Assembly: GCF_021869535.1 (NCBI RefSeq)
Contig: NW_026262712.1
Span: 10,106,001-10,170,000 of the forward strand
Direction: 5' to 3'
Length of the DNA stretch: 64,000 nt
Source: Mytilus californianus
Lineage: Eukaryota
A model generated the notes under the pieces. That model was not told where the DNA came from. It saw only the letters and a list, made by a program, of their open reading frames with translations, and searched no databases. Position numbers and translations under genes: made by a program. This document shows positions 14,313-64,000 of this stretch, piece after piece; the stretch's first letter is position 1; every line of letters begins with the position of its first letter.

Positions 14313-17300
14313 TTACACATTAACTTTGTCTAACAACATCCGCAAAACTGCTAAATGACAGTATTTGTCAGCCATCTTTATAGGCGTTTGTCCATACTTG
14401 TCACATATTCTATAATCTGCTTCTCTGTCCAACAACATTTTTACGAGTTCTGTTTTACCAGTTTTACAAGCCATCAGTATCGGTGTCTGCCCAAAATTGT
14501 CACATGCATTATAATCTGCTCCTTGGTCCAACAAGATTCTTACTACTTTTGTTTGGCCAGTTTTACAGGCCATTAGTATCGGCGTCTGCCCAAGATGGTC
14601 ACACATATTATAATCTGCTCCTTTGTCCAACAACATTTGCACTGTTTCTATTTGACGAGTTCTACTAGCCAACAATACAGGTGACTGGTTCCATTTGTCA
14701 TAATGATAATTATAATATGCGCCTCTGTCTATCAGCATCCTAACTATATCTGAATGACCTTGTCTACATGCTTTCATTAACGATGACTGGTAATTAGCAT
14801 CACATTTATCATGATCTGCTCCTTTGTCTAACAACATTCTTACTATATCTATATGACCATGTCTACACGCCTTCATTAAAGGTGACTGGCCGTCTGAGTC
14901 ACATTTATCATAATCTGCTCCTTCGTCTAAAAACGTTCTTACTACATCGCTATGACCACGTCCACACGCCTTCATTAAAGGTGACCGGCCTCTTGAGTCA
15001 CATTTTTCATGGTCTACTCCGTTGTAAAACAACATCCTCACTATTTCTGTCTGACCATATTTACAAGCCATATTTAAAGGTAACCAATCCCCTGTGCCAC
15101 CAATATAATAATATGCTCCTTTATCTAATAATCGTTTTGCTATTTCTGTATGACCATGCATACACGCCAACATTCCAAGTGACTGACCTCTTATGTCACA
15201 TTTATTATAATCTGCTCCGTTGTCTAACAACATCATTACTATTTCTGTGTGACCATGCATACAAGCCATCAATACTGGTGACTGTTCATCATTGTCACAT
15301 CTATTATAATCTACGTCTTTCTCAAATAACATTCTTACTATTTCTGTTTGACCCTGCATACAAGCTAGCATTAAAGATGACTCACCATTATTGTTACACG
15401 CATTATAATTTGCTCCATTGTCCAACAGCAACTATTTGTGTATGACCATGCATACAAGCAATCATTACCGGTGACATTCCATCGTTGTCACATTTTTTAT
15501 AATTTGCTCCAATGTCTAACAGCATTCTTACTATTTTTGTATGACCATGTTTACAAGCAATAAATAAAGGGAAATGACCAAGTATGTCACTTGTATTTTG
15601 ATTTGCTCCTTTGTCTAACAGCATTTTAACTATACTTGTATGGCCAAGTTTACATGCCATCATGACAAGTAAATCAGCAGTATTGTCACATTTGCTATCA
15701 TCTGCTTCTCTCTCCAACATCATCTTTAATATTTCTAAATGCCCATGTAAACATGTCATAATTACAGGCGACTGACCTCTCAAATCACATTTTTTATAAT
15801 CTGCTTCTCTGTTTATCAACATTTCAACTATGTCTGTATGATTATGTTTACATGCCATAAACAGCGGTGACTGTTCAAGATTGTCACATTTACTGTAATC
15901 TGCGCCGTTGTCTATTAACATCCTTACTATGGTTGTGTGACCATGTATACAAGCCATTAGTGTAGGCGACTGACCAATTTCGTCACATTTATTACAATCT
16001 GCTGCTTTGTTTAAAAACATTCTCACTATGTCAGTATGGCCATATCTACAAACAATCATCAGAGGCGACTGGCCACAAATTCCACTTTCGTTTACATCAA
16101 CACCATGACTGCAACACCACTGGATCATATTCATGTCTCCAATCGAACAACAATGTAGCATGACAGTGTCACATACAATATCCCTGTAGTATAACATTTC
16201 ACGTATACATCTTTTATAATCAGTATCACAGGCATGTACCAATTGCTTTTGGTAACCTACATCTAATGTATTCAAATAACACAGAAACCTTTGTCTGAAA
16301 TGACGCATTTTCATGTTTTTGTTATTAAATACATCTTGTAGTTTCCCTTTTGACCAGTCGTCAATCATTCTCTGCATGTATAGTTGGTGGTACTCAGAGG
16401 GCACACTCGTGATAGACTGATCTGTGGCGTCTATTCTTTCCAGTAAAAATATTTCCCGTATCAAGCAGCTGTCAGCATTCTTGATCAGACAGCCGATTAT
16501 TTTCTGTCCAAAGTATTTAGCTAGAAAGTGAAATATTTTATCATGAATAGTTGTGTAGAAGCTTTTAGTTTTTAATATAAGTTTGTTGTTTTCTGTTGTT
16601 GGATATAATTTGTCTTGTTTTTTTAATAATGTATTTAAAAGGGAATCCATTTCATCTTTCAAAAAAAGTCTTGATGTTCCTCTGTCCAGTTTACACGTTT
16701 CACACGTGTTCTCTATGATAGTTTTTGTTTCTTCATCAATCTCCTTCGTTAACATATCTTCGTTCAGTTTGTTATTGAACATGACACATAAAACCAAAGC
16801 ACAGTATTTACCAAAACATCTTCTCTTTTGTAGCTGGTCAACCTGTGCTTCATAAACTGAATAAGGATGCTGGAAAAAATGTTTTATGTCGTTGGTAGGA
16901 TTTTCATAATACAATTGACATAAAAGTGGAAAACAATCGTACAAATCATAATAATCTGAAATCTCAATAGCTTTTGTTTCGAGGTATACCTCAGCTATTG
17001 ATTGTTTCTCTTTTTTTGTCAAGCACATATCAACTGACAAAAAATTACACACAGATGAATTAAAAATTGATAATGTGTCAAAGTTGTTATCTTGGTACAC
17101 TTGCAATCTACATGCTACCATTATTTTTGTTTGTTTATCTTCAGTTATCTCTTTTATAGGACCACTGACGGATTCTCAAAGTTTGATATCATTCTGGCTC
17201 ACAGAAAAATTCCCAAATAAATCTTCTATAACAAACAATGTTTTCTGGTTTGGATTGTAATATTTGACAATGTCACCTGGATCTGTCACTAAAAGTATGT

Positions 17301-17486
17301 CGTACCCATGAGCATTCATTTGTAAAGCCACATGCTGGAGTGTTGCAGTCTTCCCTACACCAGAACTAGCTGTTATGGTAACGCAACTGTTGCCTTGTAA
17401 AAGTTGCAGTACGTATTTGGCAGCTCTTGTGCTTACAAACATCTTATCCTTATTTTTCCATTTTTCAAGATTTTTGTTGATTTGTG
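14313..17486 (-). pseudogene. Copy B terminal exon: STAND (nSTAND3-like) NTPase + about 19 ankyrin repeats, disrupted by one nonsense codon and one frameshift
   Basis: Acceptor ttgtag| at 17489-17487. Walker A ASSGVGKT, Walker B LFVIED. In-frame TGA at 17178-17176 (IKL*ESVSG) continues in the same frame into ORF 15403-17121. Near 15430, ATA GTT GCT GTT GGA lacks 5 nt relative to the previous repeat (ATA GTA AGA ATG CTG TTA GAC), shifting into ORF 14313-15431. ANK consensus GQSPLMMACxHGHTEIVRMLLDKGADYNKCD. Confidence 0.85.
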
Positions 17487-18479
17487 CTACAATGAAATTT
17501 AACACAAACTCTATCATTATTTATATAAATAAGAATTGAGTGGACTTATATAACCTATAAGAAATAAATAACTTCCGCCTTTTCTAAAATTACATCCAAA
17601 TGAATTATTCAAGCAACTCTGTGGATAATATACAAACATTTCACTAATGCTACCCTGGGAATTCTTTACACAATGATTTAATAGCATATACCCCTTCTAT
17701 GTGAGCAGTTCAACCTGACATAGAATTTTCTCCTCTTATATATAGAAATATATGAACAAAAATACCGTAATAATGTGAGTTGTCCGTCATTGTGTTATTG
17801 TGTTATTGTGTCATGGTAAATGTTTGTTTATATATCTGTTTGTTTTTATAGTGATTAAGATAATAACACAACGGTGACTGCTGTACCCCTATTTTTGACA
17901 TTTTTACCTATTATGTCTTTTTGTTTTGTTCACACATCGTTGTCAATATAATGGCATTTTATACGACTGTCATACAAGTGAGAGGTTTATCTAGCTTTAA
18001 AACCAGGTTCAATCCACCATTTTCTTCATAAGCAAATGCCTGTACCAAGTCAGGAATATAGCAGTTGTTGTCCATTCGTTTGGTGTGTTTGAGCATTTGA
18101 TTTTGCCATTTGATTAGGGACTTTTCGTTTTGAATTTTCCTCGGAGTTCAGTATTTTTGTGATTTTACTTTTTTTTGTCTCATTGGCACTCATACCACAT
18201 CTTCTTATATCTATATAAAGTCTATACAAACTGACAAAACCGACAGCTCGGCTTGACGTCCAACGGAACGTCTGGAAAAAAACTGTCATATTCCTGACAT
18301 GGGTCTTTTATAGCTGACTATGCGATATGGGCTTTGCACATTGTTGAAGGCCGAACAGTGAACTATAGCTGTTAGTTTCTGTGTCATTTGGTCTCTTGTG
18401 GAAAGTTGTCTCATTGGCAATCATACCACATTTTCGTTTTTTATACGGAATGGCGTTGTCAGTTTGTCTTATGAGTTTG

Positions 18480-18960
18480 TATCTTCCGCCTCTCTTAAGA
18501 AGTGTATGAAGGAGTTTTGCAAATTAAGAACAGGTCGACAAGGAGAGATAAACAGGCTGTTCCCATAGCAGTCTGACAACATGCTCGACAATTCTACCTC
18601 CAAATTCAGTAAATATGATGTCACTGAGAAACTCCAGCATACTGATCACTTGTTCTTCGATGTTGTTTGTTTTATACTCGGTACATTTTCAACAAAATAT
18701 TCCAAATTAATTTCAACAATAATAAATTTGAAGCGCATTGTACCCTTTTTATGTAGGAAGGCACTGAGGATTATTTTCTTAAACGGGTTTTCAATTTTTT
18801 CTGCGGTATGGCAGCGTAAAATGTAGAAAAATCGATGGTATTTGTAGAAATTATTTCAGAGAAGGAACGAGATTAGAAACTTTCTAGTAATGCGTTAGAG
18901 TGCTAATGAATCCGGATATGGCATCTACGCGAGTAACAGTTTCATTCTATTTCCAGCAGA
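18480..18960 (-). mobile_element. Decayed Penelope-like RT fragment in intron 3 of copy B
   Basis: DFSTFYAAIPQKKLKTRL, EEQVISMLEFLSDIIFTEFGGRI and MGTACLSLLVDLFL across frameshifts; homologous to 6400-6700. Confidence 0.65.
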
Positions 18961-19909
18961 CAAATTTTGTGTTGCTCAAACGGTCATTTCCTTGCTACAA
19001 CATGCATATGAACCTGTCAATGTCATTTGTTTGTACGGAATTTAGTGAGGTTAAGGTATCCAATAAAAAAGTACAATATACCATCATTTCTAATTATCTG
19101 TGGGCAGAAACAATAAATTGAATCTGATCTGTAAATATTTATTCAGTTGTAAAAATCAATGTTCAATGTTTACTAAACAATGGCATAAACATGAAAATGG
19201 GAGTTGTGTGTGCACGTTAAACTTGTTCCACCAATTTAGGCAATGATGACCATTTGTTATTTGTTGTTGTTTTCATGTACATGTTTTCTCTGGAGTGGGG
19301 AATTTGTGTTGGTGTTATGTGCATGTTATATTGTCCAATAGTTTTTGAATTACAGTAATCCTTTACATGCAATTTTACTTCAAAATAAGACTTAAACAAT
19401 CCAACTTCCACCTGACATTTCTAGCATGGTCTATCAGTATATATCTCTAGTGTTTCAATATACTTTACTACTCTTTCAGTTGGCGTCTTTGAAAATTTCA
19501 TTTGTATGTTTGTTTGAATATTTTAAGTTGTGTAGCATATCTTGTGTATGTTTAAATCACTTTGGATCATGGATCACAGTTTCGGTCACAATAACAAATT
19601 AAATCTGTTTGGGTTGCCAACACATTTTGTTCACCTAACAGAACTATAAACAGCTTGCATAAAAGTGGGAGGTATAGCTAGTAATAAAACTAGGTTTAAC
19701 CCACCATTCGGGAAATTCCGGTACCACGTCGAGAATATGACTGTTGTGTTTCAGTCGTTCCGTTGGTTGATAGAGTTGAGCGTTTAGATTGAGAGGATTT
19801 GTGAATTTCTCGCTTTTCGAATTTAACTTGCAGTTATATAAAGAGTTTAGTATGACCTTCCATTATTGGTTATTTTTCTAAGTTTACAACTTTAATTTCA
19901 AATGTTTAC

Positions 19910-20237
19910 CTCTTACATTCCATGGCACTGTATCCTGCTGAGAGTTTGCAAGTTTTTTTTGGAGCGATGCATAGGAATTCTTCATTTCTTCATAGTCTTC
20001 TTGAAGCAGTGAATAGCGTTTAGTTCCTTCTTCGTAATTTTCTTGCAGTAGTTCATGTGATTTCTTGATTTTTAAATGAGACGATTTCAATTCTTCCAAT
20101 GATCCTTTTATTTCTTTGATTTCATCCTTAGAATGTTTGATATCCATTATTATTTCTTGGTTGGTCTGATCTAAAAGTTTGGTTTTCAACTGATAACATT
20201 CCTGTTCCATTGTGCGTCCTCCTAGTCTAGCAATAGC
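19910..20237 (-). CDS. Copy B coding exon 3: HEPN C-terminal helix + coiled-coil linker
   Basis: Acceptor gttacag| at 20240-20238 and donor G|GTAAAC at 19909; 328 nt, phase 0 to 1. AIARLGG...EIKEIKGSLEELKSSHLKIKKSHELLQENYEE...VPWNVR with heptad pattern. Phases match the flanking exons. Confidence 0.8.
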
Positions 20238-20892
20238 CTGTAACATATATGATAGTACTCGAAAAAGCAGATGATACACAAATTGTATGATGTGTAGAAA
20301 TTCTAAAATATTATGGCAATAAGTTAAAGAGATTAGACAGTCGTCATGCATGAACGGGTAAACTACATATAGAAAAGAAGAAAGGAAAGGAAACACGTCT
20401 TCTGAAGAATAATTCTACATTATATCAAGTTATTGACCATCGGCCAGGGAAGCTATATGTGCTTACCGGAATTAGAGATGAATAGACGATGCAATGTAAT
20501 AATGAAATATACTTCCGATAAGGTTTGTCAAACAACTATATTTTAGTCACTAACATGACGCCTTATCATAAAATGCATGATCACATTAATCACCAGCTCG
20601 ATCAGATGGTACCGACATTGGCGTCAAGTAACGATGTACATAGTATTTAAGACTGTTGAAATACAAAGATAAACACTTATAAGTTTTTCAATACCCATAG
20701 TTTCTGATGAAAGCCTTAGCAATGTTTGATCGCTATTGGCCTAGTGGTAGGAGGGGATAAAGTTTCGAAAAAAAACCCACAACATATGAACAATAGGGAA
20801 CAAAGTGTTCACAAAAGGTCGTTGCGGCTTTCTTTTTTTTTAAATTAATAACGTAAATATAGATTTTCAGAAAACTGATTAGAATTACATAC

Positions 20893-21122
20893 ACCTGTTA
20901 TATCAGTCCAGGCAGTATTGAAGAATGTAGTGTCTATTTTCCCATCATCAAGATGAGCCAAGTAGTTCCTGTAATACTTTATTCTTGACAAATCAGCACC
21001 TTGTGTGACTTCAACTGTTGATGGTAAACAGTCATATCCACCAGCAGGAGGAATCATGGGAGTTAGATTTCTCAATAATGTTATCATCAACGTGACGTCA
21101 AACGTTTTTGAATCAGGAACAC
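20893..21122 (-). CDS. Copy B coding exon 2 (HEPN catalytic half)
   Basis: Acceptor tttccag| at 21125-21123 and donor |GTATGT at 20892; 230 nt; RNYLAH motif intact. Confidence 0.85.
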
Positions 21123-21944
21123 CTGGAAACATTAAAACATTAAAACATATGCAAGATAAACACTCATACTTAGTCATTCGGATTTGGTTTTGTCGAATGA
21201 AAAAAAGTAATAACAGTTAATATTCTTTGAAGACATCGATCAGATGTTTCCTCTGAAGCTAGATCAGATCTGTCTATCCATCAGGAACACATGAGATCAA
21301 CCCAGGTTTTTGCGAGGTTCATGCTGCTCAATCTTTAGTTTTCTATGTTGTGTTTTGTATACTGTAACTTGTATTTTAGTCGTTTTTCGTTTTTTCGAAT
21401 GGCATTGTCACATCGTTTTCGACCAAAAAGTTTTAGAAAAACTTCAAAAGCTTTCACTTCTCTTTTCCACACCATAGATAATATAACCCTAATCATTCAC
21501 TGTGATGTTACATCTCAACATCCATTTAAAAAAGATATATGTTGAAGCGTTTTTAAAGAACAAGATATTGTATTTTTTTCTATAGCAGACACTGATTGTA
21601 ACCTTCTATAATAGCAAAGTGCAGCTATATTAAGCTGATATTAGAGAAGAGGGTTAGACATTAAAGCAGGCAGTTAATCACTTTGAGCTTGCTTAAGTAA
21701 CTGTTAGCATTATTTCAAAAAAAGTAATTTGGTTTACAGGTTTATTTATACTTTTGTTTATGTCTCTCCTATTTAACAATCATAAAGATACACGTTTTTC
21801 CTTTATCATTTTTGTATGCTGTTTTCGGAAATCGACTGTTTCTAGAATAAACCAGGTATCTATAAACATACCAGCTTGCAATTGAGGACATCCAGTGAAA
21901 AAGAGATTGTTTTGGTAGAAATAAACATGAATCACTTAACTAAC

Positions 21945-22880
21945 AAGCCTGAGTGTATCTTAGGAACAGAAGATACCTCTGTGTCTAGAATAGAACATGC
22001 CTCTCTAGACGTACCAGCCTGAGGATATCTCGGGAAGAGAAGAGCCACTGTTTCTAGAATAGAACATGCCTCTCTAAACTAACCAGCCTGAGGATATCTC
22101 GGGAAGAGAAGAGCCACTGTTTTGAGAATACAACATGCCTCTCTAACCTTACCAGCCTGAGGATATCTCGGGAAGAGAAGAGCCACTGTTTCTAGAATAG
22201 AACATACCTCTCTAAACTTACCAGCCTGGGGATATCTCAGGAAGAAAAGAGACCACTTATTTCTGGAATAGAACATGCCTCTCTAGACGTACCAGCCTGA
22301 GGATATCTCGGGAAGAGAAGGGATCACTGTTTCTAGAATAGAACATGCCTCTCTAAACTTACCAGCCTGGGGATATCTCAGGAAGAAAAGAAACCACTTG
22401 TTTCTAGAATAGAACATGCCTCTATAGACGTACCAGCCTGAAGATATCTCGGGAAGACAAGGGATCACTGTTTCTAGAATAGAGCATGCCTCTCTAAACT
22501 TACCAGCATGGGGGTATCTCCGAGAGAGAAGATACCTCTGTTTCTAGAATAGAACATGTATCTCTTAACTTATTAATCTGATGGTATCTCGGGAAGAGAA
22601 GAGCCACTGTTTCTAAAAAAGAACATGCCTCTCTAAACTAACCAGCATGGGGTATCTCCGATAGAGAAGATATCTCAGTTTCTAGAATAGAACATGCATC
22701 TCTTAACTTATTAACCTGATGGTATCTCGGGAAGAGAAGAGCCACTGTTTTTAGAATAGAACATGCCTCTCTACCAGCCTGAGGATATCTCGGGAAGAGA
22801 CGAAACCACTGTTTCTAGAATAGAACATGCCTCTCTAAACTTACTAGCTGATCATATCTTGGAATTAGTAGATTCCAATG
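21945..22880 (-). repeat. About 69-bp minisatellite (about 13-14 units) derived from the exon1/intron1 junction of copy B
   Basis: Period of 69 seen at 21991/22060/22129; some units are 70-71 bp. Minus-strand unit reads ...CTTCTCTTCCCGAGATATCCTCAGGCTG|GTAAGT..., matching the exon end LLFPR..G|GTAAGT. Confidence 0.85.
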
Positions 22881-23354
22881 TTTCTATAATAAAACTGGGA
22901 TATCTGTACTTAAAATGATATACAGGAGAGTCTACTTTATTCAGAAAGCAACTAATCAACTATCCCAGGTTCTTAATTCTCTCCGTGCCAGAAGTCGCAT
23001 AAGGCCCTAGCTTTTCTATCTTTTGCCGCTGTTCTGGCCACGTTCCAACTATCCCAGGGGTTTCGTCTAAATACGTATCATTAGTAGCGCTCAACTCAAA
23101 ATAGTTTAAAGGTCAAATCAAATACAGCGTTGGAGAGCATTCAAACCAAGAAATACGAATGAGTAGTCATAAAAACATGTTTCTATTAATTTATAAGCTT
23201 CGAGATATCTTGCATAAAAGGGGTTCTGGTGTTTTGAGGAATGTCTTGAGAACAGGAGATTCCGCTGATACTGGACAAAACATTATATCTCTGTATGTAC
23301 CTATTAGGATATCTAGGTGACGGGAGAATCAACTAAGGCTTGAAAAAAACATAG

Positions 23355-23790
23355 ATAGATATAAGAAGATGTGGTATGAGTGCCAATGAAACACCTCTTC
23401 ATCCAAGTCACAATTTGTAAAAGTAAACCATTATAGGTTAAAGTGCGGTCTTCAACACGGAGCCTTGGCTCACACCGAACAGCAAGCTATAAAGGACCCC
23501 AACAAGTGAATAGTGTAAAACCATTCAAATGGGAAAAACAACGGTCTAATCTATATAAAAAACGAGAAACGAGAAACACTTATGAACCACATCAACAAAC
23601 GGCAACTACTGAACTTCAGGTTCCTGACTTAGGACAGGTGCAAACAAATGCAGCAGGTTTTAAACGTTTTAATAGGTACCAACCTTCACCCTTACCTGAA
23701 ACAATAGTGTAACATCACAACATAGACAGACACACTATAAAATATCAATTGAAATGGCTTAACTCAATCAAAAGACACATTAACACAAAA
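23355..23790 (+). repeat. Interspersed repeat family C, interrupting the junction-derived array
   Basis: ataagaagatgtggtatgagtgccaatga...gagccttggctcacaccgaacagcaagctataaagg; also at 35545-35797(-), 51855-52080 + 52895-53097(-), with fragments at 18175 and 32500. Confidence 0.85.
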
Positions 23791-50771: not shown

Positions 50772-52081
50772 GTAATGAACTTGCTGAATGAAATAATACT
50801 GTAAATTAGTAAAGATTATCGCTCCTGCAATTTTATTTTAAATTTATGTGCATGTGAAAACTGCAAAATCGTTGGTCTTGAATAATGGACAAATGATCAA
50901 AATAACCAGTAAGATTAATTAAGGATTATTATTTCAAGGTTTTGTTTGCCAAAGGATTGATGCAATCTTTAAACAAGCAAGTATTGTCTTTTGTCTACTG
51001 AACTACCAATAATGGTCATGGCCAAATCTTTTTAGAATTTATTGGAACAATATTGATACATACATGCATTAGGAGGTATTGAAGACCTAGATCTCTTTTT
51101 TTCAATTAATGTCTCCTGTTTCTTTATTAAACCTTATACTTTATTATAATAAGGGTACAAGTATTTTTTCCTGTAAGGGTAACCAAGTCAAATGAACAAT
51201 TTAAAAAAAAAAGATTTTTCAACTTTATATAATTTAATGAATACAGGACATGTAAGCAATGAAATAAATATGAAAACTTTTTTTGGAAACATTGTTTTCT
51301 TATTCTTAGTTATAACTGGTGATCTGACACTTTTCCTTACTTTTTTTATTTTAATTGTCTCCCATTATGTGATTGATGTTTATCTAATAAAAACAAAATT
51401 GTGAAATTATCTCCCTTGCTTTATGGAAAACTGTTTTTTTCTTTATATTGGTTATTATTGATAATTGTCGCCCTTAACATGTTTTGTTTTATCTTAAACA
51501 TCTTTTTTTTCAGTTATTGCTGATAATTGTCTCCCATTACTTTTATGTGCTTTTATCAAACATAAATTTTCACTTCGTACTATGAACATCAAAATTATTT
51601 ATTTTGTAAAAATATTTCCTTTCTCTTTTTGAACTGCACACGAATACTTAACAACAAAATTATTTTCATTTACCTGTGTTTAAAGTAATTGCAAATGGCT
51701 GATATTTTTGTTCGAGCATATTGTTTTTCTTATATTGTTTAACATTTCACAGCGGTATAACATGTTACTTTTATTATTCTTCCCTTAGTTTATTCATTTT
51801 GTATTTACATTGTATCATAGATCAAGTTTATTTGTTCAGTGTATGTTCACTGGTGTTAATATGTCCTTTGATTGAGTTAAGCCATTTCAGTTGATATTTT
51901 ATAGTGTGTCTTTCTATGTTGTGATGTTACACTATTGTTTCAGATAAGGGTGAAGGTTTGGTACCATTAAAACGTTTAAACCTGCTGCAATTGTTTGCAC
52001 CTGTCCTAAGTCAGGAATCTGATGTTCAGTAGTTGTCGTTTGTTGATGTGGTTCGTAAGTGTTTCTCGTTTCTTGTTTTTG

Positions 52082-52890
52082 TCTTGACTTGACGGAGTCA
52101 AAAAACGAGACATAGGTATGCTGTTTCTGGCGGCGGGGTGTCAACAATGTATTAGTTTGTAATTAGGTCTAGTTCATGGTGAACCACTAGTGGTAGGTCA
52201 ATGATATTTGGTATGCAGTTAGTTTAGCATTGGCATATCTCATTTCCATGGAGATTATTTGGCTTTGCCCCCTTAGTCATGGTCTATAGACTTTGAAAAT
52301 TTTGCTAAGTTAACATGTATTAGTTTGTAATTAGGTCAGTTCAAGGGGAACCATTAGTGGTAGGCCATTGTTAATTGGTGTTCAGTTGTATAAGCATTAG
52401 CACATCTCATTTCCGTAGAGAATATTTGACCCCGCCCCCTCAGTCATGGTCTAGTGACTTTGAAACTTTTGCTTAGTTTACATGTATTAGTTTGTGATTA
52501 GATCAGTTTAAGATGAACTGCTAATGTTAAGTCAGTGATATTTGGTATGCAAATGTATTGGCATTTGCAAGTATCGTTTCCATGGAGATTATATAGCCCC
52601 ACCCCTGATCATGGTTCATTGACTCTGAAACTTTTACATAGTTTACAAGTTAATGTTTGTGTTTAGGTTTGTTTAAAGGGAACGACTTATAAGTCAATGG
52701 TATTTGGTATGCAGTTGTATTAGCATTGGCACATCTCATTCCATGGAGATTGTTTAGCCATGTACCTTCAGTCATGGTTCATCGACTTTGAATATTTGCA
52801 TAACTTACATGTTAAAATATTGCTATTTTAATTTCAACATTTGCATTATCAAAATTACAAAAAGGCGAGACATATCTCTGTGATAACAGT
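52082..52890 (+). mobile_element. HINE-like element with about 150-bp core repeats, inserted into a family-C repeat
   Basis: Four to five units of atgtattagtttg...ggtatgcag...catctcatttccatggaga; the flanks 51855-52080 and 52895-53097 are two halves of one interspersed repeat. Confidence 0.7.
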
Positions 52891-53120
52891 TTATTTATAT
52901 AGATTAGACCGTTGGTTTTCCCGTTTGAATGGTTTTACACTAATAATTTTTGGGGCCCTTTATAGCTTGCTGTTCGGTGTGACCCAAGGCTCCGTGTTGA
53001 AGACCGTACTTTGACCTATAATGGTTTACTTTTGTAAATTTTGACTTGGATGGAGAGTTGTCTCATTGGCACTCATACCACATCTTCTTATATCTATATA
53101 TGTTTTTTTCTTATTTTCAG

Positions 53121-53237
53121 TTATTACTTGTTATTGTCTCCCTTGCCCTCATTTGCTTTATTCGAAAGGAAAAGAGTTACAAGGATTATAGAAGACGTTC
53201 TGCTGGAAACTTTGGTAGTGGAATTCAAAAGTTGTGA
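53121..53237 (+). CDS. Tetraspanin terminal coding exon (end of TM4 + tail)
   Basis: ttttcag|LLLVIVSLALICFIRKEKSYKDYRRRSAGNFGSGIQKL*; total CDS 247 aa; AATAAA at 53577 and 54008. Confidence 0.88.
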   Translation, partial: LLLVIVSLALICFIRKEKSYKDYRRRSAGNFGSGIQKL

Positions 53238-55970: not shown

Positions 55971-58900
55971 TTTGATCATATTTTTATCGACTTTGGAGCT
56001 GAGTGAATTTTCAGAAAAAATTCAAAAGATGATTTAATTTTCACATTTTTGGTTTTACCCCCAGACCGTTAGAACTTACAGAGAGCTAGCAAACATATCT
56101 ACATTGTGCACTTTAAATTATGGATTTATCATTGTTTGTCCTATATTTTATATTTTATATTTCTATATATTGAAATGTTCAGTATAGACCATTACTATAT
56201 ATGTTTAAAGTCTATCTGCACAACCCAGCCATTTGAGCCTTTGATCCATTTTTATATCTCTTTTTGGCAGAGATCAATGTTTTGATTTCTTGTCTCCCTT
56301 TATAATTGTGTTGTTGACAATGTCAAGCTTTGACTACTAAAGGCATCACACTTCTGTCATCTTTTGTCAATAACACACAGTCCACTCCACATAACACTTT
56401 TGAACTGCAACTCCTTGAAAAGGCTGGAGGGAATATGGATGAAATATTGAAGAATACAATCAATATACAGTCATGGATCCACGCAAGTGTCACTTTTGTC
56501 ACTTAATTCATTTAACACCCTTACTTTTGATTGATAAGTTGGTGTTTTTTGTCACTTTCAGCACTATTGTGCTATTTTGTGGTAATCAGTTTTTATTGGT
56601 GGCAGTAACCTGAGGGCCCAGAGAGAACCACCGACCTTCAGTAGGAAAACTGACAATCCTTACTTTTGAGATGTATAATTATACTTCTCATAAATTTATC
56701 TGATCTGAATAAACAAGTTACTTTAACAATGTTATTTTCATCCTTTTACCACATCTTATACATTCAGATGTTTTTACCGAAAGTGATCCTTTAACTACAG
56801 GGTATTTATAATAGGACTGTAATAATTAGTATACAGATTAATAAAATTTCAAAACTATTTCAAGATAAAACGGGCATATAACCTGTGACCTCTAGTTGCT
56901 TCTATTTCATTTGGTCTCTGGTGGAGAATTTTTTCACTGGCAATCAAATCACATGTACCACATCTTCTTATTTTTATATATATGATATATAAATTGATCA
57001 GGTGCCTTTTATAACAATCTAGACTGTATGGGTTTTGCTCCTTGCTGACAATTGTACATTTACCTGTCCTTTAGTCAGTTGGGAATATATGTCTAATTGT
57101 CAATCATACATCATCTTTTAACATGTTTAATACTTTATATAAAGAAATGTAGGAACAAGGGAATAAGATTAAAAGATAACCCGGACAATGATAAATTATT
57201 CAAGTTATATGTTAAATAAAATGCTTAGCCGAATGCAGCCTGATACGACCACAGAGGTCGAAACCTGAACAGTTGGGGCAAGTTTGAACACAATATTCAA
57301 GCTTGATACTGTCTGAATTTGGATTGTGATAAAATTTTTGACATAATATAGGTTTCTGGCACAAAATAAATGTGGCCAAAGATCTTAAAAATTTGAAATG
57401 CGACATTTAATTTACCTAGTATGGTCTGATATCCAAAATCTAACAACATTGTTAGATTCAACATATAAAAAAAACACCAAAAATTTAATTTCAGCAGAAA
57501 TCAAACAAAGTTTAATTTTGGACCCTTCAAACCTTAATATGGACTAATTTGAAAACAGGGCCCAAAATAAAAAATCTAAATGCACAATAAGATTCAGCAT
57601 ATCATAGAGCCGCAATAATTCAGTTTTTGATGAAATCAAACAATTAATTTTGGACCCTTTGGACCTCAATGTAGACCAATTTGAAAATGGGGCCCAATAT
57701 CCAAAATAGTAATACAAGGTTAGAACCCCCAAAAATTAAAGACTTTAAATTAATCCCATTGAAATTGGTTAAAAGATTTGTATTTATTTTCAACTGAAGA
57801 TTTCTTGCTATTGCGCAATACTGTGCTATTGTGCAATACTATGTTATTGCGCAATATTCAATACTGTGTTATTGCACAATACTGTTCTATTGCGCAATAC
57901 TGTGCTATTGAAGATTTCTTGCTATTGCACAATACTAACCAAAAAATTACGAAAAAAAAAATCCTCCATAAAATTTTTTTTTGAAAAAATTTGTTATTTT
58001 GAAAAATCTTGAAGAAGAAAAGTACAAATTGAAGTATGAACCCCCCAAAAAAAATTGAAAACAAAAATCCCTCCCCCCCCCCCCTTGGAGTAATTACCCC
58101 CAAACTCAATCCCAGCCTTCCCTTTCTGGTATGGAACCTTGTAGTACAATTTCAGAGAGATCCATACACTTAAACACAAGTTATTGTCTGGAAACTAGAA
58201 CAATGCTTGTTTTTGACCCCTTTTTTGCCCCAAATTCCTGAACGTTTGGGGCAATTACCCCAAAACTTAATTCCAGCCTTCCCTTTGTGATATGGAACCT
58301 TGTGGTACAATTTCAGAGAGATCCATACACTCACACACAAGTTATTGTCCGGAAACTACAAAAATGCTTGTTTTTGGCTCCTAATTCCTAAACTGTTGGT
58401 ACCATAACACCCAAAAACAATCCCAACCTTCCTTTTGTGGTATTGAACCTTCTGGTAAAATTTCATAGAGATCCATTCACTTAAACTAAAGTTATTGTCC
58501 GGAAACCAAATGTGTCTTCAGACGAAGACAAGGACGACATGATAGCATTATACGAACGCAAAAAAATTTTTGCGGTTGTGTAAAAAGTGAGAAGACACTA
58601 AGGGGAAAAGAAAAAAGGTCTCATATTTGTTTAGGGGCCAGATGAAGCCCGCCTCTGGGTGCAGGATTTTCTCACGGTGTTGAAGACCCATTGGTGGCCT
58701 TTGGCTGTTTTCTGCTTTGGTTGTTGTCTCTTTGACACATTGCCCATTTCCATTCTCAATTTTACTCATTAATATTTCTTGTTTTTCATTTATTGTTTTG
58801 TACGTTGACATAAATCAGGCTTTTAGAAGTTTTAGTTTCTAGTTTGAATTGTTTTATCATGTTTATGTTTGCCTTTTCTGGGCCTTTTATAGTTTGCTAT

Positions 58901-60168
58901 GAGGTATAAGTTTTGCTCATTGAAGAAGCCCGTACACAAATGGTACAGTGATTTACATTTGTTAACTTCTATGTCCTTTGGTCTCTGGTGGAGAGTTTTT
59001 ATCATTGGCTATAATATCACATCTTCTTATTTTTATTTAGACAACATTATAGCCACAAAAATATGTGGAAAAAAAAAAAATAAAACTAAAAATTGAAAAA
59101 CAAGATGTAATAAAATTAATAAATGTTTTTATATTTAAAGCAGCAACATACCGGTACATGCAGTCAATTTATAACTAAGAAGTAAAACATTCTTTTAACA
59201 GCTTGCATAACAGGATTCAACAAAAAAAAATGTCAACACATACATCCAAAACATACTATGATTGCAATTCATATACAACAAAATCTTCTCTCACAAGGGC
59301 ACAATGGTTTATATTTTAATTGTAGTAAAAATAATTTGGTACATGGTACAGAAAATTCTGTGCTAATTTTTTCGTAACTTTTGTTCTCTATAATCTCGAC
59401 CCAAATAGGCATAGACATGATAGACAGAAACAATTAATTATCAAAATAAATTGTAAAAGCACAATTTTAGGCTCTTTTTGTCAGAAATGATAGGGCGAAG
59501 CCATTAAACTCCAAAACATCACCTTATTTCCTACTACATGCATATGTGTACTAAGAGGCTTTAACTCACTTTACACAATTCGCAAGGACAGGGAAACAAG
59601 AAATAAATTACCAATTTGTATAATTAAAACATGGACAGACGGGACTTCCCCTAAAGTGTCAATGTGATATTAAGAATACTGTTGATCAACCTTTTTTCAT
59701 ATTACTGATACTCCTACAGGTTACTGATGGGTACTAAGCTGAGAAGAATACCAATTTTTCAAGTCTATTATTGTTAAGTTTGACTGACAGGAGGATGAAC
59801 AAATGGAAATAGAGAGTAAACAGTTATGAGAGAGCAAGCCCCAAAAAATATCTTTGGAGAAAAAAACTGTTATCCTCCAAAGGTAACTGTAAATCAGAAA
59901 GTTTAGCAACCTTTTTTATCATGTAAATCAGAAAGTTTAGCAACCTTTTTTATCATGTAAATAGAATGCAAGATCATGAAGATTGGAATTGGATAATTTT
60001 GGAAAATAAAACATCTGAACTTTTCGTCGTGTTTGTATCGCACATGTTTTTAGTCCATTGTACAACAAATGCAATAATAAAGCAGACCAAATTTTCTGAA
60101 AAGCTCATCACTAAATATTCTATGTTAATGTTTCACGACAAAATGCTATAAATATAAGTCTTCATGGT

Positions 60169-60840
60169 CAGTCAGGGGTACTACTTGTACAAGTAATTTT
60201 TATTTACTTCAAGAAGTAAATATTAATATACTTGTATAAGTAAATTTGAAGGATACTTATACAAGTGTATTTTATTTACTTGAATAGGTAAAAAAAAATT
60301 GGGCTTAGTTATGTCCCTTAGACATTCAGATTTTTTTACTTATACAAGTAAAAAAGTCATCCTATCTTCTTTTCTTGAATTCTTAGGACTTCTTTGCTCT
60401 AATAGAATTTTTGATTGTCTGTCCTTTGCAGATGTCTTTACTAATCATTTAAGTGTAATTTCATGGACAATGAAAATCTCATTTGTCTGTTATCTTCAGA
60501 ACACTGCTCATTTACAAGCCCCCAAGGGGCAATTTTTGAAGGCCTTGCGCAAATACTTAAGATCTTTGCGCAATCAGTTTCTTTGTTGAATTAATGAGAT
60601 GAAACATTGAACTCTAACCAAAAATTATGAGCTAACCTGAGAAAAATTGTTAAAGACATGTTTTTACATCTCAAAACTTGAGAATTTTTGTGGGATTGTA
60701 AAAAAAATTTACTTATACAAGTAAATTTTTGAGAAAATTAAGGGGAGATTATTCAAACATTATAATTAACTTATATAAGTTTATTTTATTTACTTCTTCA
60801 AGTAAATAAAGATTACTTGTACAAGTAGTACCCCTGACTG
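60169..60840. mobile_element. MITE with about 75-bp TIRs and 5-bp TSD (copy 2)
   Basis: Same family as 41069-41748; ATGGT duplicated on both flanks; ends 37 bp beyond the stop codon of the NTPase/REase ORF. Confidence 0.9.
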
Positions 60841-60877
60841 ATGGTTGTGGTTGGGTGATGTCATTTCAACCCACAGA

Positions 60878-62722
60878 CTATTTGTTTTTACAGCTTGAAA
60901 CAACAGAGGTTTTTACAACTGCTTCTAACAGACTATGAAATTTTTCGTCATAAAACTTCAATGAATTCAAAATATGTGGAGCACCTATGTTGACAATGGA
61001 AATGTTTTTAAAAATGTAATTCCCTGTAAGATTATATGTATCACTTTCTTTTGTCGCATTAATAACCACTACATGAAGCGTGACTTCATCTATGATGTCT
61101 TTAAAGACTGATAATGCTCTGCTCATTGTAATTCCAGTGTGCAAGGATCCTGTTGCAACCCGTACCAAAAATAGCATCCCTCTATTTTTAGATTTCTTTG
61201 ATGGTGGACTGCTACTTGATTCGTCACTACTACCAGAATCAAACAAAGTAGGCTGAGTGTATAGAAAATAATCAAAGCCCATGAAATTTGTAACATGAGG
61301 ATAAATAATGAATGACTGATCATTACACTTTTCTATTTCTCTTTTCACATAAACGGCAGCTTTGCACACATTTGCTAAATGACCTTTATATTTCTCCTGT
61401 ATTATTGCATCTTTTACAATTTCATTTTTTGGTCTTAAGCAATATAACTTTCTGGGCTTCATTACTCCGTCACATTGTATATACTCATTTGTATCGGATG
61501 CTTCTAGACTACAAGTATCAAAAAATTTATGTTTATCGGGGATAATAACACAATCGTTTTCCACTTGACAATTTACAAGACCATCCTTGAACATTTTCCG
61601 CAAACTACCATTTTGTAGACTAAAATCCAAAATTCTATTAGCATCTTCACAATTTAATACCTCTTCCAACTTCAAAGGCAGCTTTTCTATCCAATGTTGA
61701 CCAAGAAAGGGCACTAAATGGCTGATAGTTACATATCGATCCCCTTCTTCCAGCTCGAGCTCGTAAAATCTGCAATTATCCTCCAAATCCTGCCTGGTTA
61801 CTTCAAGAATTTTAATGTCAAATATATTAATAGCTACCTTAAAATTAGCAACCTGAGAAAGTGTACAAATTATGTTTTTACCCTGCCCAACTAGGCAGTC
61901 CAAAAGTAGTTTAGTATCAAGTAAAAATGTTTCACAATAACTGCTTTTCAATTCATCTTTAAACATTGCAATCTCTTCTCTTAATTTAATTTCAGCACAG
62001 TAAGAAATTTCGTTAATTTTTTTACCAAATATGAACATTTCATCGAATGCATCATGTAATAGTCTTGGTGTAACTATGAATTTATCCTTCAACTCATAAT
62101 ATACCTTATCACCTAATTTGAGTAAAGAACTAACTAATTCATGTCGCCCTGGGAAATCTGTACTTTTTACTGACAACATTCCGTTCCAAATCCTTTCAAA
62201 GTCATTTAGATCTAGTTGAAAGTCCTTGTTGAAGTCAAGGTTAGTTGTATAAACACATGCAGTGAATCTAGATTCTATTAAAACTATTTTTGCAAAAGAT
62301 GTGAGTTCTTCAATTTTTTCGACTAACTTCCCGTTAAATAAAGTCACATGATCAATGACCAAACAATCGTTATTTTTTACACTGGCAATGTATTGAGAGA
62401 ACTTTTCTAAATTCTTATCCTTCTTTTCAATTATACTCAAGTCAACATAATGAATTCCTCCATCTCCATTTTTTCTACAACTAAGAACATGATACATCAC
62501 AGATGAAGATTTGCCGATACCTTGAATCCCTACAATTCTTTCTTTTTGAAGAGCACCTTTTCTGACTGCTTTAATAACTTCCAAAAAATGGTTATGGAAT
62601 TTGGTTTTGATAAAACATTTATCTTTAAAATTCCTTGCAAATGTTTTATATGTCAGAAAATGTTCATCTGTCTCTGCAACTTTCAGAATCTCTTCCTCAA
62701 ATCTATTCTTTATGTCTGGGTC
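60878..62722 (-). CDS. Terminal exon (614 aa) encoding a P-loop NTPase + putative REase-fold domain, Crinkler/RHS-like
   Basis: The listed ORF starts at a TTG. The frame stays open 46 codons further (DPDIKNRFEEE...) up to acceptor ctgtttttag| at 62725-62723. Walker A GIQGIGKS, Walker B CLVIDH, IVTPRLL, C-terminal YPHVTNFMGFDYF...LFLVRVATGSLH. No stops in 1845 nt. Upstream exon not identified. Confidence 0.75.
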   Translation of the reverse strand, partial: DPDIKNRFEEEILKVAETDEHFLTYKTFARNFKDKCFIKTKFHNHFLEVIKAVRKGALQKERIVGIQGIGKSSSVMYHVLSCRKNGDGGIHYVDLSIIEKKDKNLEKFSQYIASVKNNDCLVIDHVTLFNGKLVEKIEELTSFAKIVLIESRFTACVYTTNLDFNKDFQLDLNDFERIWNGMLSVKSTDFPGRHELVSSLLKLGDKVYYELKDKFIVTPRLLHDAFDEMFIFGKKINEISYCAEIKLREEIAMFKDELKSSYCETFLLDTKLLLDCLVGQGKNIICTLSQVANFKVAINIFDIKILEVTRQDLEDNCRFYELELEEGDRYVTISHLVPFLGQHWIEKLPLKLEEVLNCEDANRILDFSLQNGSLRKMFKDGLVNCQVENDCVIIPDKHKFFDTCSLEASDTNEYIQCDGVMKPRKLYCLRPKNEIVKDAIIQEKYKGHLANVCKAAVYVKREIEKCNDQSFIIYPHVTNFMGFDYFLYTQPTLFDSGSSDESSSSPPSKKSKNRGMLFLVRVATGSLHTGITMSRALSVFKDIIDEVTLHVVVINATKESDTYNLTGNYIFKNISIVNIGAPHILNSLKFYDEKFHSLLEAVVKTSVVSSCKNK

Positions 62723-64000
62723 CTAAAAACAGAAAAAATAAACATGCTCTGAAAATTATTCATCAGTGAAACACAATGGTTGTTAAATGGTATGAAGCAA
62801 AATTTCAAGAAGAAAACAAGCAAATTTGATATTAATTTACCCTGCTTTGTGCTAGACCTGAACATGCTGAGCCAAATTTGTAACAATCCTCATTAAGACA
62901 TATCACTCAATATTTAAAATGAAGAATGATGCAAGATTGCTGTTAGCCAATCAAAATAACGTATAATAATGAAACATACTTCTATTAGTATAGGGGGAGG
63001 GTTGAGATCCCTATACACTTATTATTTGACACTGAGCCAACCAGTCTTTGCTTTAACTACTAAATTTTTGCATGCTTAGCACAGAAATAACAATATTATC
63101 TAAAAGTTTAAAGTCTTCTTTAGTTTGAGACAACTTCCCTCAGTGTAGCCAAGCCTTCTACCATGAGACCATAAGGCTGGTTGATTTATTATGTTTATCA
63201 GGTTTTCAATATGAAGTTATTACGAGGAAGAAAATATGGATGAATAGATTCATCATATTAATCACAGTTTTGATCTTTGAAGTCTTTTGTTCTGCTTGGA
63301 TTGGGCCAAAACATGGCACTTGTTGTTTTACTGGTCCTGTTGATAGATATCATAGTGTTTAATTTTGTCTTTTTTTGAATTTGCCCTCGAGTTTAGCATT
63401 TTTTCTCAATCTGCCTTTGGTGAAATATTTCATGGACTCAGCCAATCATACTCTTTTTTAAATCTTCTTTGTAACGTTGATTATATTGTTTCGTACAAAT
63501 TTTGGTAAAGTCAAATGCCTATTACAGTTACTACATGTACTAATAATTACATTAGATAAAATTGAGAATGGAAATGGGGATTGTGTCAAAGAGACAACAA
63601 CCCGACCAAAGAGCAGATAACAGCCGAAGGCCACCAATGGGTCTTCAATGCAGCGAAGAAAATCCCGCACCCGGAGGCATGCTTCAGCTGGCCCCTAAAC
63701 AAAAATGTATACTAGTTTTAGAATGCAGCAATACTTTTTTGTAGGTTTTCATGTTTTTTGTATTATTTTTTCATCAAAATATGTAAACTCTACTTTATCT
63801 GACAGAATCAAACTTTTCATTTCTAGCCATCAGTAGCCTTTACTGTCATTCTTTTTTCTTCAGATGCTAGGTTATAATCTGCATTAAAAACTCAGAATTT
63901 ATCTAATTGTAATTATTATTCCCTAAAATTGTTGTGACTTATTAAATAAACTGCTTCGCTGAGCGCAGCTGGATACGACCGCAGAGGTCCAACCCTGAAC

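Follow-up and report, generated by a model that had tools for sequence, protein, structure and literature searches.

A lineage-restricted gene of Mytilus californianus encoding an AAA+/STAND-type NTPase and a C-terminal domain with possible affinity to restriction endonucleases

Proteins of the Crinkler/RHS (CR) kind are built from a header domain followed by C-terminal toxin modules, among which the combination of a nucleoside triphosphatase (NTPase), a helix-turn-helix (HTH) region and a restriction endonuclease (REase) is the commonest in Phytophthora (PMC5289972). CR-like proteins have also been reported in free-living eukaryotes (PMC5289972; PMC12957317). An NTPase-REase module of this type was proposed, in an initial annotation of the DNA, for a gene of the mussel Mytilus californianus located in a stretch of 64,000 nucleotides (nt), hereafter the window, which was analyzed at its full length. 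Here, we compared this gene and its predicted product with their relatives and with described NTPases and nucleases. The reading toward which we lean, with a little more than even confidence, is that of a host gene of pteriomorph bivalves combining an AAA+/STAND switch with a C-terminal restriction-endonuclease-like domain, which would bear a non-canonical site and engage nucleic acid.

The coding part of the gene and the adjoining part of its intron are located at the end of the window as follows.

60878 to 62722, minus strand: coding sequence within the terminal exon, made up of 614 codons and the stop codon (60878-60880), equivalent to residues 2-615 of the annotated 615-residue protein P0001.
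62723 to 64000, minus strand: 3' part of the single intron, whose whole length is 2592 nt.

Translation of positions 60878-62722 gave 614 uninterrupted sense codons on the minus strand, closed by the stop at 60878-60880, in agreement with the intact terminal exon and phase-0 acceptor proposed earlier. The G+C content of the region is 32%, and by our own arithmetic 614 codons in a row would therefore escape a stop with a probability of approximately 1e-21 per start. The exon is entered in phase 0 through an acceptor composed of a polypyrimidine tract and the AG at 62723-62724. An identical protein of 615 amino acids is on record (P0001) from a 120-Mb chromosome-scale record of the M. californianus assembly GCA_021869535.1. 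It consists of a Met followed by the 614 codons of exon 2, and a tblastn search of P0001 against the window returned 100% identity over residues 2-615. The exons were taken from the annotation, and exon 2 as well as P0001 (Met plus exon 2) were used as queries. The annotated exon 1, comprising the 5' untranslated region (UTR) and the ATG, lies about 1317 nt past the end of the window and adds the start Met only; this ATG (record L001, 10001-10003) stands directly before a consensus GT donor (L001 10001-10009), and the acceptor is found at L001 12595/12596. The window contains no runs of N and a single copy of the gene, and the 615-residue protein has no signal peptide.

This layout, with one tiny 5' exon and one large coding exon, was also observed in relatives. 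In the Mytilus galloprovincialis ortholog, the 5' exon encodes the Met alone and a single exon encodes residues 2-612, and in P0005, an M. californianus paralog located 70 Mb away, residues 4-630 are encoded by a single exon. Two RNA-derived oyster contigs map to the Crassostrea/Magallana angulata genome as two blocks from which a 1680-nt intron has been removed, the first exon accounting for eight codons. In addition, in-frame stops are present 2-22 codons upstream of the ATG in four contigs from relatives, two of these contigs being shown to be spliced. Since exon 1 contributes the Met only and stops precede the ATG of the relatives, the family has no hidden N-terminal domain, and the upstream exon that had been expected to encode one is reduced to an ATG. 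The M. californianus locus is thus a real, spliced animal gene with an annotated exon 1, an intron and comparative support, its expression having as basis the RNA-derived contigs of an oyster relative.

An exhaustive profile search among 1.84 billion representative proteins retrieved 46 relatives at E ≤ 1e-3, many of them fragments; a word search found nine proteins, and a second word search with a 23-sequence alignment added only Mytilus paralogs. All named relatives are from pteriomorph bivalves of the genera Mytilus (M. californianus, M. coruscus, M. galloprovincialis, M. edulis and M. trossulus), Crassostrea/Magallana (gigas and angulata), Saccostrea (S. cucullata), Ostrea (O. edulis) and Pinctada (P. 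imbricata). The 46 relatives included no prokaryotic, viral, oomycete, fungal or trypanosome/kinetoplastid protein, pattern scanning, which covered 185,579 prokaryotic genomes and the IMG/VR viral contigs, recovered no relative, and a literature search on the locus names of the relatives found nothing. An ordinary, broadly conserved animal ATPase, which the initial annotation had named as the outcome that would speak against it, is not what these searches found, the family being located in pteriomorph bivalves among its named relatives.

The paralogs found number from two to about five per species, with about three paralog lineages in Mytilus and two annotated paralogs, 70 Mb apart, in the M. 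californianus genome. On either side of the gene, the flanking sequences of M. californianus and M. galloprovincialis are collinear. Comparing these two genes by the Nei-Gojobori method, we obtained a ratio of nonsynonymous to synonymous substitution rates (dN/dS) of 0.32 at a dS of 0.26, similar across all domains; on this measure, the gene is under purifying selection, though not strong. Taken on these sequence comparisons, it is a vertically inherited, low-copy host gene of pteriomorph bivalves.

The protein is divided into the following parts, delimited by secondary structure assignment (DSSP) on the predicted model and by column counts in the alignment.

62552 to 62722, minus strand: residues 2-58, which form three short helices ahead of the P-loop and contain the family-conserved KTKFH (residues 40-44).
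62210 to 62551, minus strand: P-loop nucleotide-binding domain, residues 59-172, with Walker A at 62507-62530 (K72) and Walker B at 62348-62362 (D125-H126).
61556 to 62209, minus strand: helical lid and winged-helix-like region, residues 173-390, with the nearly invariant W180, T219-P220, N300, F302 and W345.
60881 to 61555, minus strand: C-terminal α/β domain, residues 391-615, about 225 residues.
61178 to 61255, minus strand: disordered Ser/acidic loop, residues 491-516, between the second and third core strands of the C-terminal domain and ending in a basic cluster.

A full-length AlphaFold2 model built on 23 relatives reached a predicted local distance difference test score (pLDDT) of 83 and a predicted template modeling score (pTM) of 0.83. 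When this model was compared with the PDB using Foldseek, 29 matches were obtained at E ≤ 1e-3, all of the AAA+/STAND kind and with probabilities up to 1.00; they comprised SAMD9, ORC subunits, Cdc6, NLRC4, DnaA, Apaf-1, the ZAR1 and NRC4 resistosomes, TnsC and the clamp loader, with a best E of 3.5e-5. With a span of 250-480 columns, the alignments extend over the P-loop domain, the helical lid and the winged-helix-like region alike. The N-terminal NTPase of the initial annotation was borne out in this way, as a P-loop AAA+/STAND domain recovered by fold search at E 3.5e-5 to 1e-3. As modeled, the N-terminal portion of the protein belongs to the AAA+/STAND class of P-loop NTPases, within which STAND and initiator-clade AAA+ are not separable here.

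The motifs of this part agree with the assignment. Walker A, GIQGIGKS (residues 66-73, window 62507-62530), and Walker B, LVIDH (residues 122-126, window 62348-62362), are placed in the model on the expected strand-loop-helix and strand elements, respectively. The Walker A Lys (K72) is conserved in 24 of 26 members and replaced by Ile in P0019 (Saccostrea cucullata) and P0020 (Mytilus trossulus), which suggests that these two are nucleotide-binding-deficient paralogs alongside intact ones. The Asp-His pair of Walker B is invariant (27/27). The Thr219-Pro220 pair of IVTPRLL (residues 217-223, window 62057-62077) was found in 29 of 30 members and opens a lid helix, at what may be the site where AAA+/STAND proteins place a nucleotide-sensing motif. 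All the motifs quoted earlier for this gene were present in the DNA, namely these three along with YPHVTNFMGFDYF, LFLVRVATGSLH and PPSKKSK of the C-terminal domain.

At the level of profiles, recurrent sub-threshold Pfam matches to AAA_14, ATPase_2, AAA_24, nSTAND_NTPase5, nSTAND3, AAA_22 and WH_DRP were observed among 23 members, and weak matches to DnaA, DnaC, Hda and clamp loaders were obtained in PHROGs and NCBIfam. Neither the protein nor up to 23 of its relatives reached the curated-family cut-offs of Pfam, NCBIfam, PADLOC or PHROGs, and sequence and profile searches of the PDB gave no real match, the sole one, at E 1.2, being noise. Residues 2-58 showed no ubiquitin-like header and no Pfam match. 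At the sequence level, the family is new; in fold, the closest relatives that could be demonstrated are STAND and initiator AAA+ ATPases.

The C-terminal domain was modeled separately (residues 385-615, 26 sequences) with a pLDDT of 85 and a pTM of 0.85. Its elements run from four strands (392-430) and a helix (449-466) through strands 471-474, 486-490 and 517-524, a short strand, a helix (532-544) and a strand (549-556) to three further strands and two helices. In this model, the central helix-strand-strand-strand-helix-strand run has the element order of the restriction endonuclease core, with Asp485 starting the second strand and position 522 located on the third. The conserved residues of the domain are N452, P476, N480, G483, D485, Y486, Q522 (R here), V523, T525, G526, H529, K542 and H551, several of which fall in two stretches: YPHVTNFMGFDYF, the YPHV...DYF stretch (residues 475-487, window 61265-61303), and LFLVRVATGSLH (residues 518-529, window 61139-61174). 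Asp485 is found in 22 of 27 members, and the same column counts gave 22/27 for His529, 25/27 for His551 and 20/27 for Lys542. Position 522 is occupied by Gln in 17 members, Arg in eight, Glu in one and Lys in one, which agrees with the earlier remark that a usual Gln is Arg in M. californianus.

Proteins with the restriction endonuclease fold recur among the weak structural matches of this domain, as MspJI, Cas4 and McrC in the PDB and as about a quarter of the top 50 in BFVD (UL24-type nuclear proteins, Mrr-domain proteins, proteins named restriction endonuclease or PD-(D/E)XK, and Cas4). This recurrence is suggestive of that fold and points to it, without being a test of it. From the model and its weak matches, we infer that the domain is possibly a divergent one of nuclease ancestry.

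The disordered loop is the one long low-confidence loop of the domain, with pLDDT below 50 over residues 495-512, and PPSKKSK (residues 507-513, window 61187-61207) lies inside it, consistent with the Ser/acidic loop in which this motif had been placed. A basic cluster ends the loop in all aligned members and would fit a reading as a nuclear localization signal (NLS). An "invariant Lys510" in the loop was considered and set aside, as its apparent invariance depends on which alignment of the disordered loop is used. A clan CE cysteine peptidase or YopJ-like identity for the domain was likewise rejected, given that, at a conservation threshold of 70%, the domain has neither a conserved Cys nor a conserved His ahead of Asp485, and that the fold matches have E of at least 0.09.

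Several observations weigh against a switch coupled to an endonuclease-like domain. Position 524 is never Lys (Ala in 20, Ser in four, Thr in two and Ile in one of 27 members), so that the canonical third-strand Lys is absent; a relocated Lys, e.g., K542, is possible. One Mytilus paralog lineage, otherwise well conserved, carries Ser485 and Arg522 together, which argues against Asp485 and Gln522 as indispensable catalytic residues. In the Foldseek search, the C-terminal model found no match at E ≤ 1e-3, the best values being 0.09 in the PDB and 0.02 in BFVD, and in the PDB unrelated folds scored equally well or better (YopJ-family/clan CE proteins, orotate phosphoribosyltransferase and cytochrome b5 reductase). 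On the side of the ATPase, two paralogs lack the Walker A Lys, and in Walker B the Asp precedes a His rather than an acidic residue, which may make ATP turnover slow. Finally, the family is low-copy, unlike the typical expanded immune families of bivalves. As for the C-terminal REase fold of the initial annotation, the helix-strand order and the fit of Asp485 stood, but the signature is incomplete, with no third-strand Lys, and no fold match reached E ≤ 1e-3.

The same observations bear on a different reading of the protein, as a non-catalytic AAA+ factor of the ORC/Cdc6/DnaA kind that would bind nucleic acid or serve as a scaffold, with a degenerate nuclease-like domain or an unrelated binding module at its C-terminus and a function in housekeeping or chromatin that is particular to these bivalves. 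The best fold matches include ORC, Cdc6 and DnaA, the weak PHROGs and NCBIfam ones include DnaA, DnaC, Hda and clamp loaders, the canonical Lys is missing in all members, Asp485 and Gln522 are both replaced in a conserved paralog lineage, and low copy number and stable synteny would suit such a factor, as would the location of the C. angulata gene between a PrimPol-like gene and DNA-PKcs, perhaps a coincidence. However, in a core housekeeping factor a dN/dS lower than 0.32 would be expected, the distribution is limited to one bivalve subclass, and the many conserved polar residues of the C-terminal domain (N480, D485, Y486, T525, H529, K542 and H551) suggest an active or ligand-binding site; we regard this reading as possible and, on balance, doubtful.

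The earlier proposal of an NTPase followed by an REase of the Crinkler/RHS type was upheld in the parallel of domain order, the order of the core elements and Asp485, but neither sequence nor profile comparison, nor any significant structural match, connected the protein with Crinkler, RHS or any nuclease. Its fuller form, in which bivalves would have captured or domesticated a true CR toxin of the NTPase-HTH-REase architecture, with a DNA-damaging C-terminal nuclease under the control of the NTPase, draws on several likenesses: the domains follow the order of the CRN C-terminus that is most frequent in Phytophthora (PMC5289972), an REase fold would accommodate both the element order and the conserved Asp of the C-terminal domain, the basic NLS-like cluster is conserved, and CR-like proteins do occur in free-living eukaryotes (PMC5289972; PMC12957317). 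Nevertheless, with E allowed up to 10, Pfam scans of 23 members retrieved neither a Crinkler nor an RHS family, the 46 relatives include nothing from oomycetes, fungi, kinetoplastids or prokaryotes, and the match to the REase fold is not significant. No Crinkler/RHS header, whether ubiquitin-like with LXLFLAK or other, was found before the P-loop, where there are only about 58 residues in three short helices. The large, variable, multi-copy and mobile-element-linked behavior of CR effectors was not observed either, given two to about five paralogs and collinear flanks in a family that is low-copy and syntenic. No donor lineage was found for a captured toxin module, all named relatives being low-copy, syntenic genes of pteriomorph bivalves with no prokaryotic or viral relative, and we consider such an origin decidedly unlikely.

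Returning to the AAA+/STAND switch with a restriction-endonuclease-like domain, a mechanism can be outlined in conditional terms. The ATPase would act as a nucleotide-dependent switch or as an oligomeric assembly module, controlling the engagement of nucleic acid by the C-terminal domain, that is, binding and perhaps cleavage through an unusual site. The polar set available to this putative site is non-canonical (Asp485, Gln/Arg522, Thr525, His529, Lys542 and His551, with no third-strand Lys). By analogy, the mechanism would resemble that of NTPase-effector conflict proteins and of ORC/Cdc6-type loaders. As for the biological role, we infer that one in intracellular defense or genome surveillance is plausible.

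The M. californianus copy has two peculiarities within this scheme. Codon 153 (window 62263-62265), whose residue directly follows strand four of the P-loop domain, encodes Arg here and Gly in 27 other aligned members; a functional change, a polymorphism and an assembly error are each possible. The other, Arg522, is common to M. californianus, M. coruscus and one Mytilus paralog lineage. With Gly153 and Gln522 both replaced by Arg, this copy may be a weakened or altered member of the family.

A more specific proposal can be put forward tentatively, namely that the family represents an undescribed minimal STAND-like immune or genome-surveillance protein, in which the switch governs a highly diverged effector derived from a restriction endonuclease, with a non-canonical Asp/His-type site. 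It would be an animal counterpart of the prokaryotic NTPase-nuclease conflict modules and of Crinkler toxins, whose origin or acquisition would date to the base of the group, with later divergence into catalytic and non-catalytic paralogs. We hold this scenario possible at best.

The surroundings of the gene were inspected as well. Directly downstream, the following element was found.

60168 to 60841, minus-strand gene's downstream side: miniature inverted-repeat element of about 674 nt, with 55-nt terminal inverted repeats that are 96% complementary, starting 37 nt after the stop codon.

The element carries AATAAA-like signals, and the orthologous site of M. galloprovincialis is empty; it is therefore a lineage-specific insertion, likely in the 3' UTR. 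It is a neighbor and no part of the gene family. The neighboring genes are ordinary host genes: a tetraspanin gene at this locus, CD225 near the paralog, and PrimPol-like and DNA-PKcs genes in C. angulata. The tetraspanin gene (Pfam: PF00335) occupies approximately 50878-53237 of the window on the plus strand (L001 22081-24440), tail-to-tail with our gene and about 7.6 kb from its stop. In C. angulata (CM046785.1, L004), the regions 1-2315 and 15180-23561 hold a Herpes_UL52/PrimPol-type gene and DNA-PKcs on either side of the oyster relative, perhaps by coincidence. In M. galloprovincialis, a gene with Mutator, RNase_T and PML_C Pfam domains is located 3.8 kb from the ortholog (L005 12647-14821).

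Such surroundings could be read as those of a transposable-element gene or its recent derivative, i.e., a helper ATPase of the TnsC/IstB kind with a nuclease; TnsC is among the fold matches (E 9e-4), interspersed repeats and the miniature inverted-repeat element occur in the intron and beside the exon, and in M. galloprovincialis the Mutator-domain gene is found at a distance of 3.8 kb. Yet no transposase and no enclosing terminal repeats were found around the gene, its flanks are collinear, and the element after the stop codon is a separate, lineage-specific insertion. Furthermore, the window holds one copy and the genome two annotated paralogs 70 Mb apart, the gene is under purifying selection, and the prokaryotic and viral collections contain no relatives. 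We therefore rate this origin as highly improbable; a transposon helper protein, the second outcome named in the initial annotation as speaking against it, was accordingly not what collinear flanks without enclosing terminal repeats revealed.

Other repeats were noted around the gene. A unit of about 150 nt is present in the intron (63557-63707) and, inverted, downstream of the gene (58622-58764), about 4.8 kb apart, and tandem units of about 150-160 nt are located downstream of the gene (58020-58513) and in the intron just past the window (L001 10474-10816). The approximately 150-nt repeats look like common interspersed or satellite repeats, not like the ends of one element. Elsewhere in the window, at 14313-17121 on the minus strand, two long open reading frames (372 and 572 amino acids) in different frames overlap by 29 nt, each densely filled with ankyrin repeats (Pfam E down to 1e-81); no Pfam match covers approximately the first 330 residues of the upstream one. 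The pair represents a single gene interrupted by a short intron or, alternatively, a gene that has been disrupted.

If the C-terminal domain is a STAND-governed nuclease, the family would offer a compact animal case of the NTPase-plus-nuclease logic of bacterial defense systems and Crinkler toxins, in mussels and oysters, whose innate immunity matters economically and ecologically. Both superfamilies would then gain a new sequence family. If, on the other hand, the domain has no nuclease identity, the family would be another orphan among the AAA+ families restricted to one lineage, and its interest would be modest. Either way, the Crinkler/RHS-type label is not one for annotation on the present evidence.

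Many members of AAA_14 and ATPase_2 carry C-terminal nuclease-like domains. These prokaryotic families (PF13173 and PF01637) provided the most recurrent weak Pfam matches on the ATPase, in 4/23 and 3/23 members, respectively, with a best E of 0.007; all of these matches fall below the curated cut-offs, and neither the exhaustive search nor the pattern scans found a prokaryotic relative. To the PD-(D/E)xK nucleases (MspJI/Mrr-type, Cas4, McrC and UL24-type), the C-terminal domain is similar in element order, in the Asp that starts the second strand and in a conserved polar residue on the third, whereas the mussel family differs in E values of at least 0.02 throughout, in the absence of the signature Lys from every member and in a 26-residue disordered insert between strands two and three.

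In the CR architecture of NTPase, HTH and REase (PMC5289972), the shared features are the P-loop NTPase, a helical DNA-binding-like region, a C-terminal candidate nuclease and an NLS-like basic cluster. In contrast to the CR modules (PMC5289972), the mussel protein has no header and no detectable profile similarity, is low-copy and resides in stable synteny, with an REase fold and catalytic triad that are putative; this likeness was drawn from the description of CR proteins. The initiator-clade AAA+ proteins (ORC/Cdc6, DnaA and TnsC) are approached in fold scores of 6e-5 to 1e-3 and in weak DnaA/DnaC/Hda matches, but the mussel protein has no sequence-level membership among them, no detected DNA-binding domain of the DnaA/ORC type and a lineage-restricted occurrence.

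Lastly, the STAND NTPases (Apaf-1/CED-4, NLRC4, ZAR1/NRC4 and SAMD9) share with the mussel protein the fold of residues ~40-390, at E 3.5e-5 to 2e-3, with a best TM-score on the query of 0.28-0.30 for Apaf-1 and ZAR1/NRC4, as well as Walker A and B and the sub-threshold nSTAND_NTPase5, nSTAND3 and WH_DRP matches. The mussel protein differs from them in lacking a repeat-type sensor and an N-terminal effector or adaptor and in falling below the Pfam STAND cut-offs, and its extra domain is globular and located at the C-terminus.

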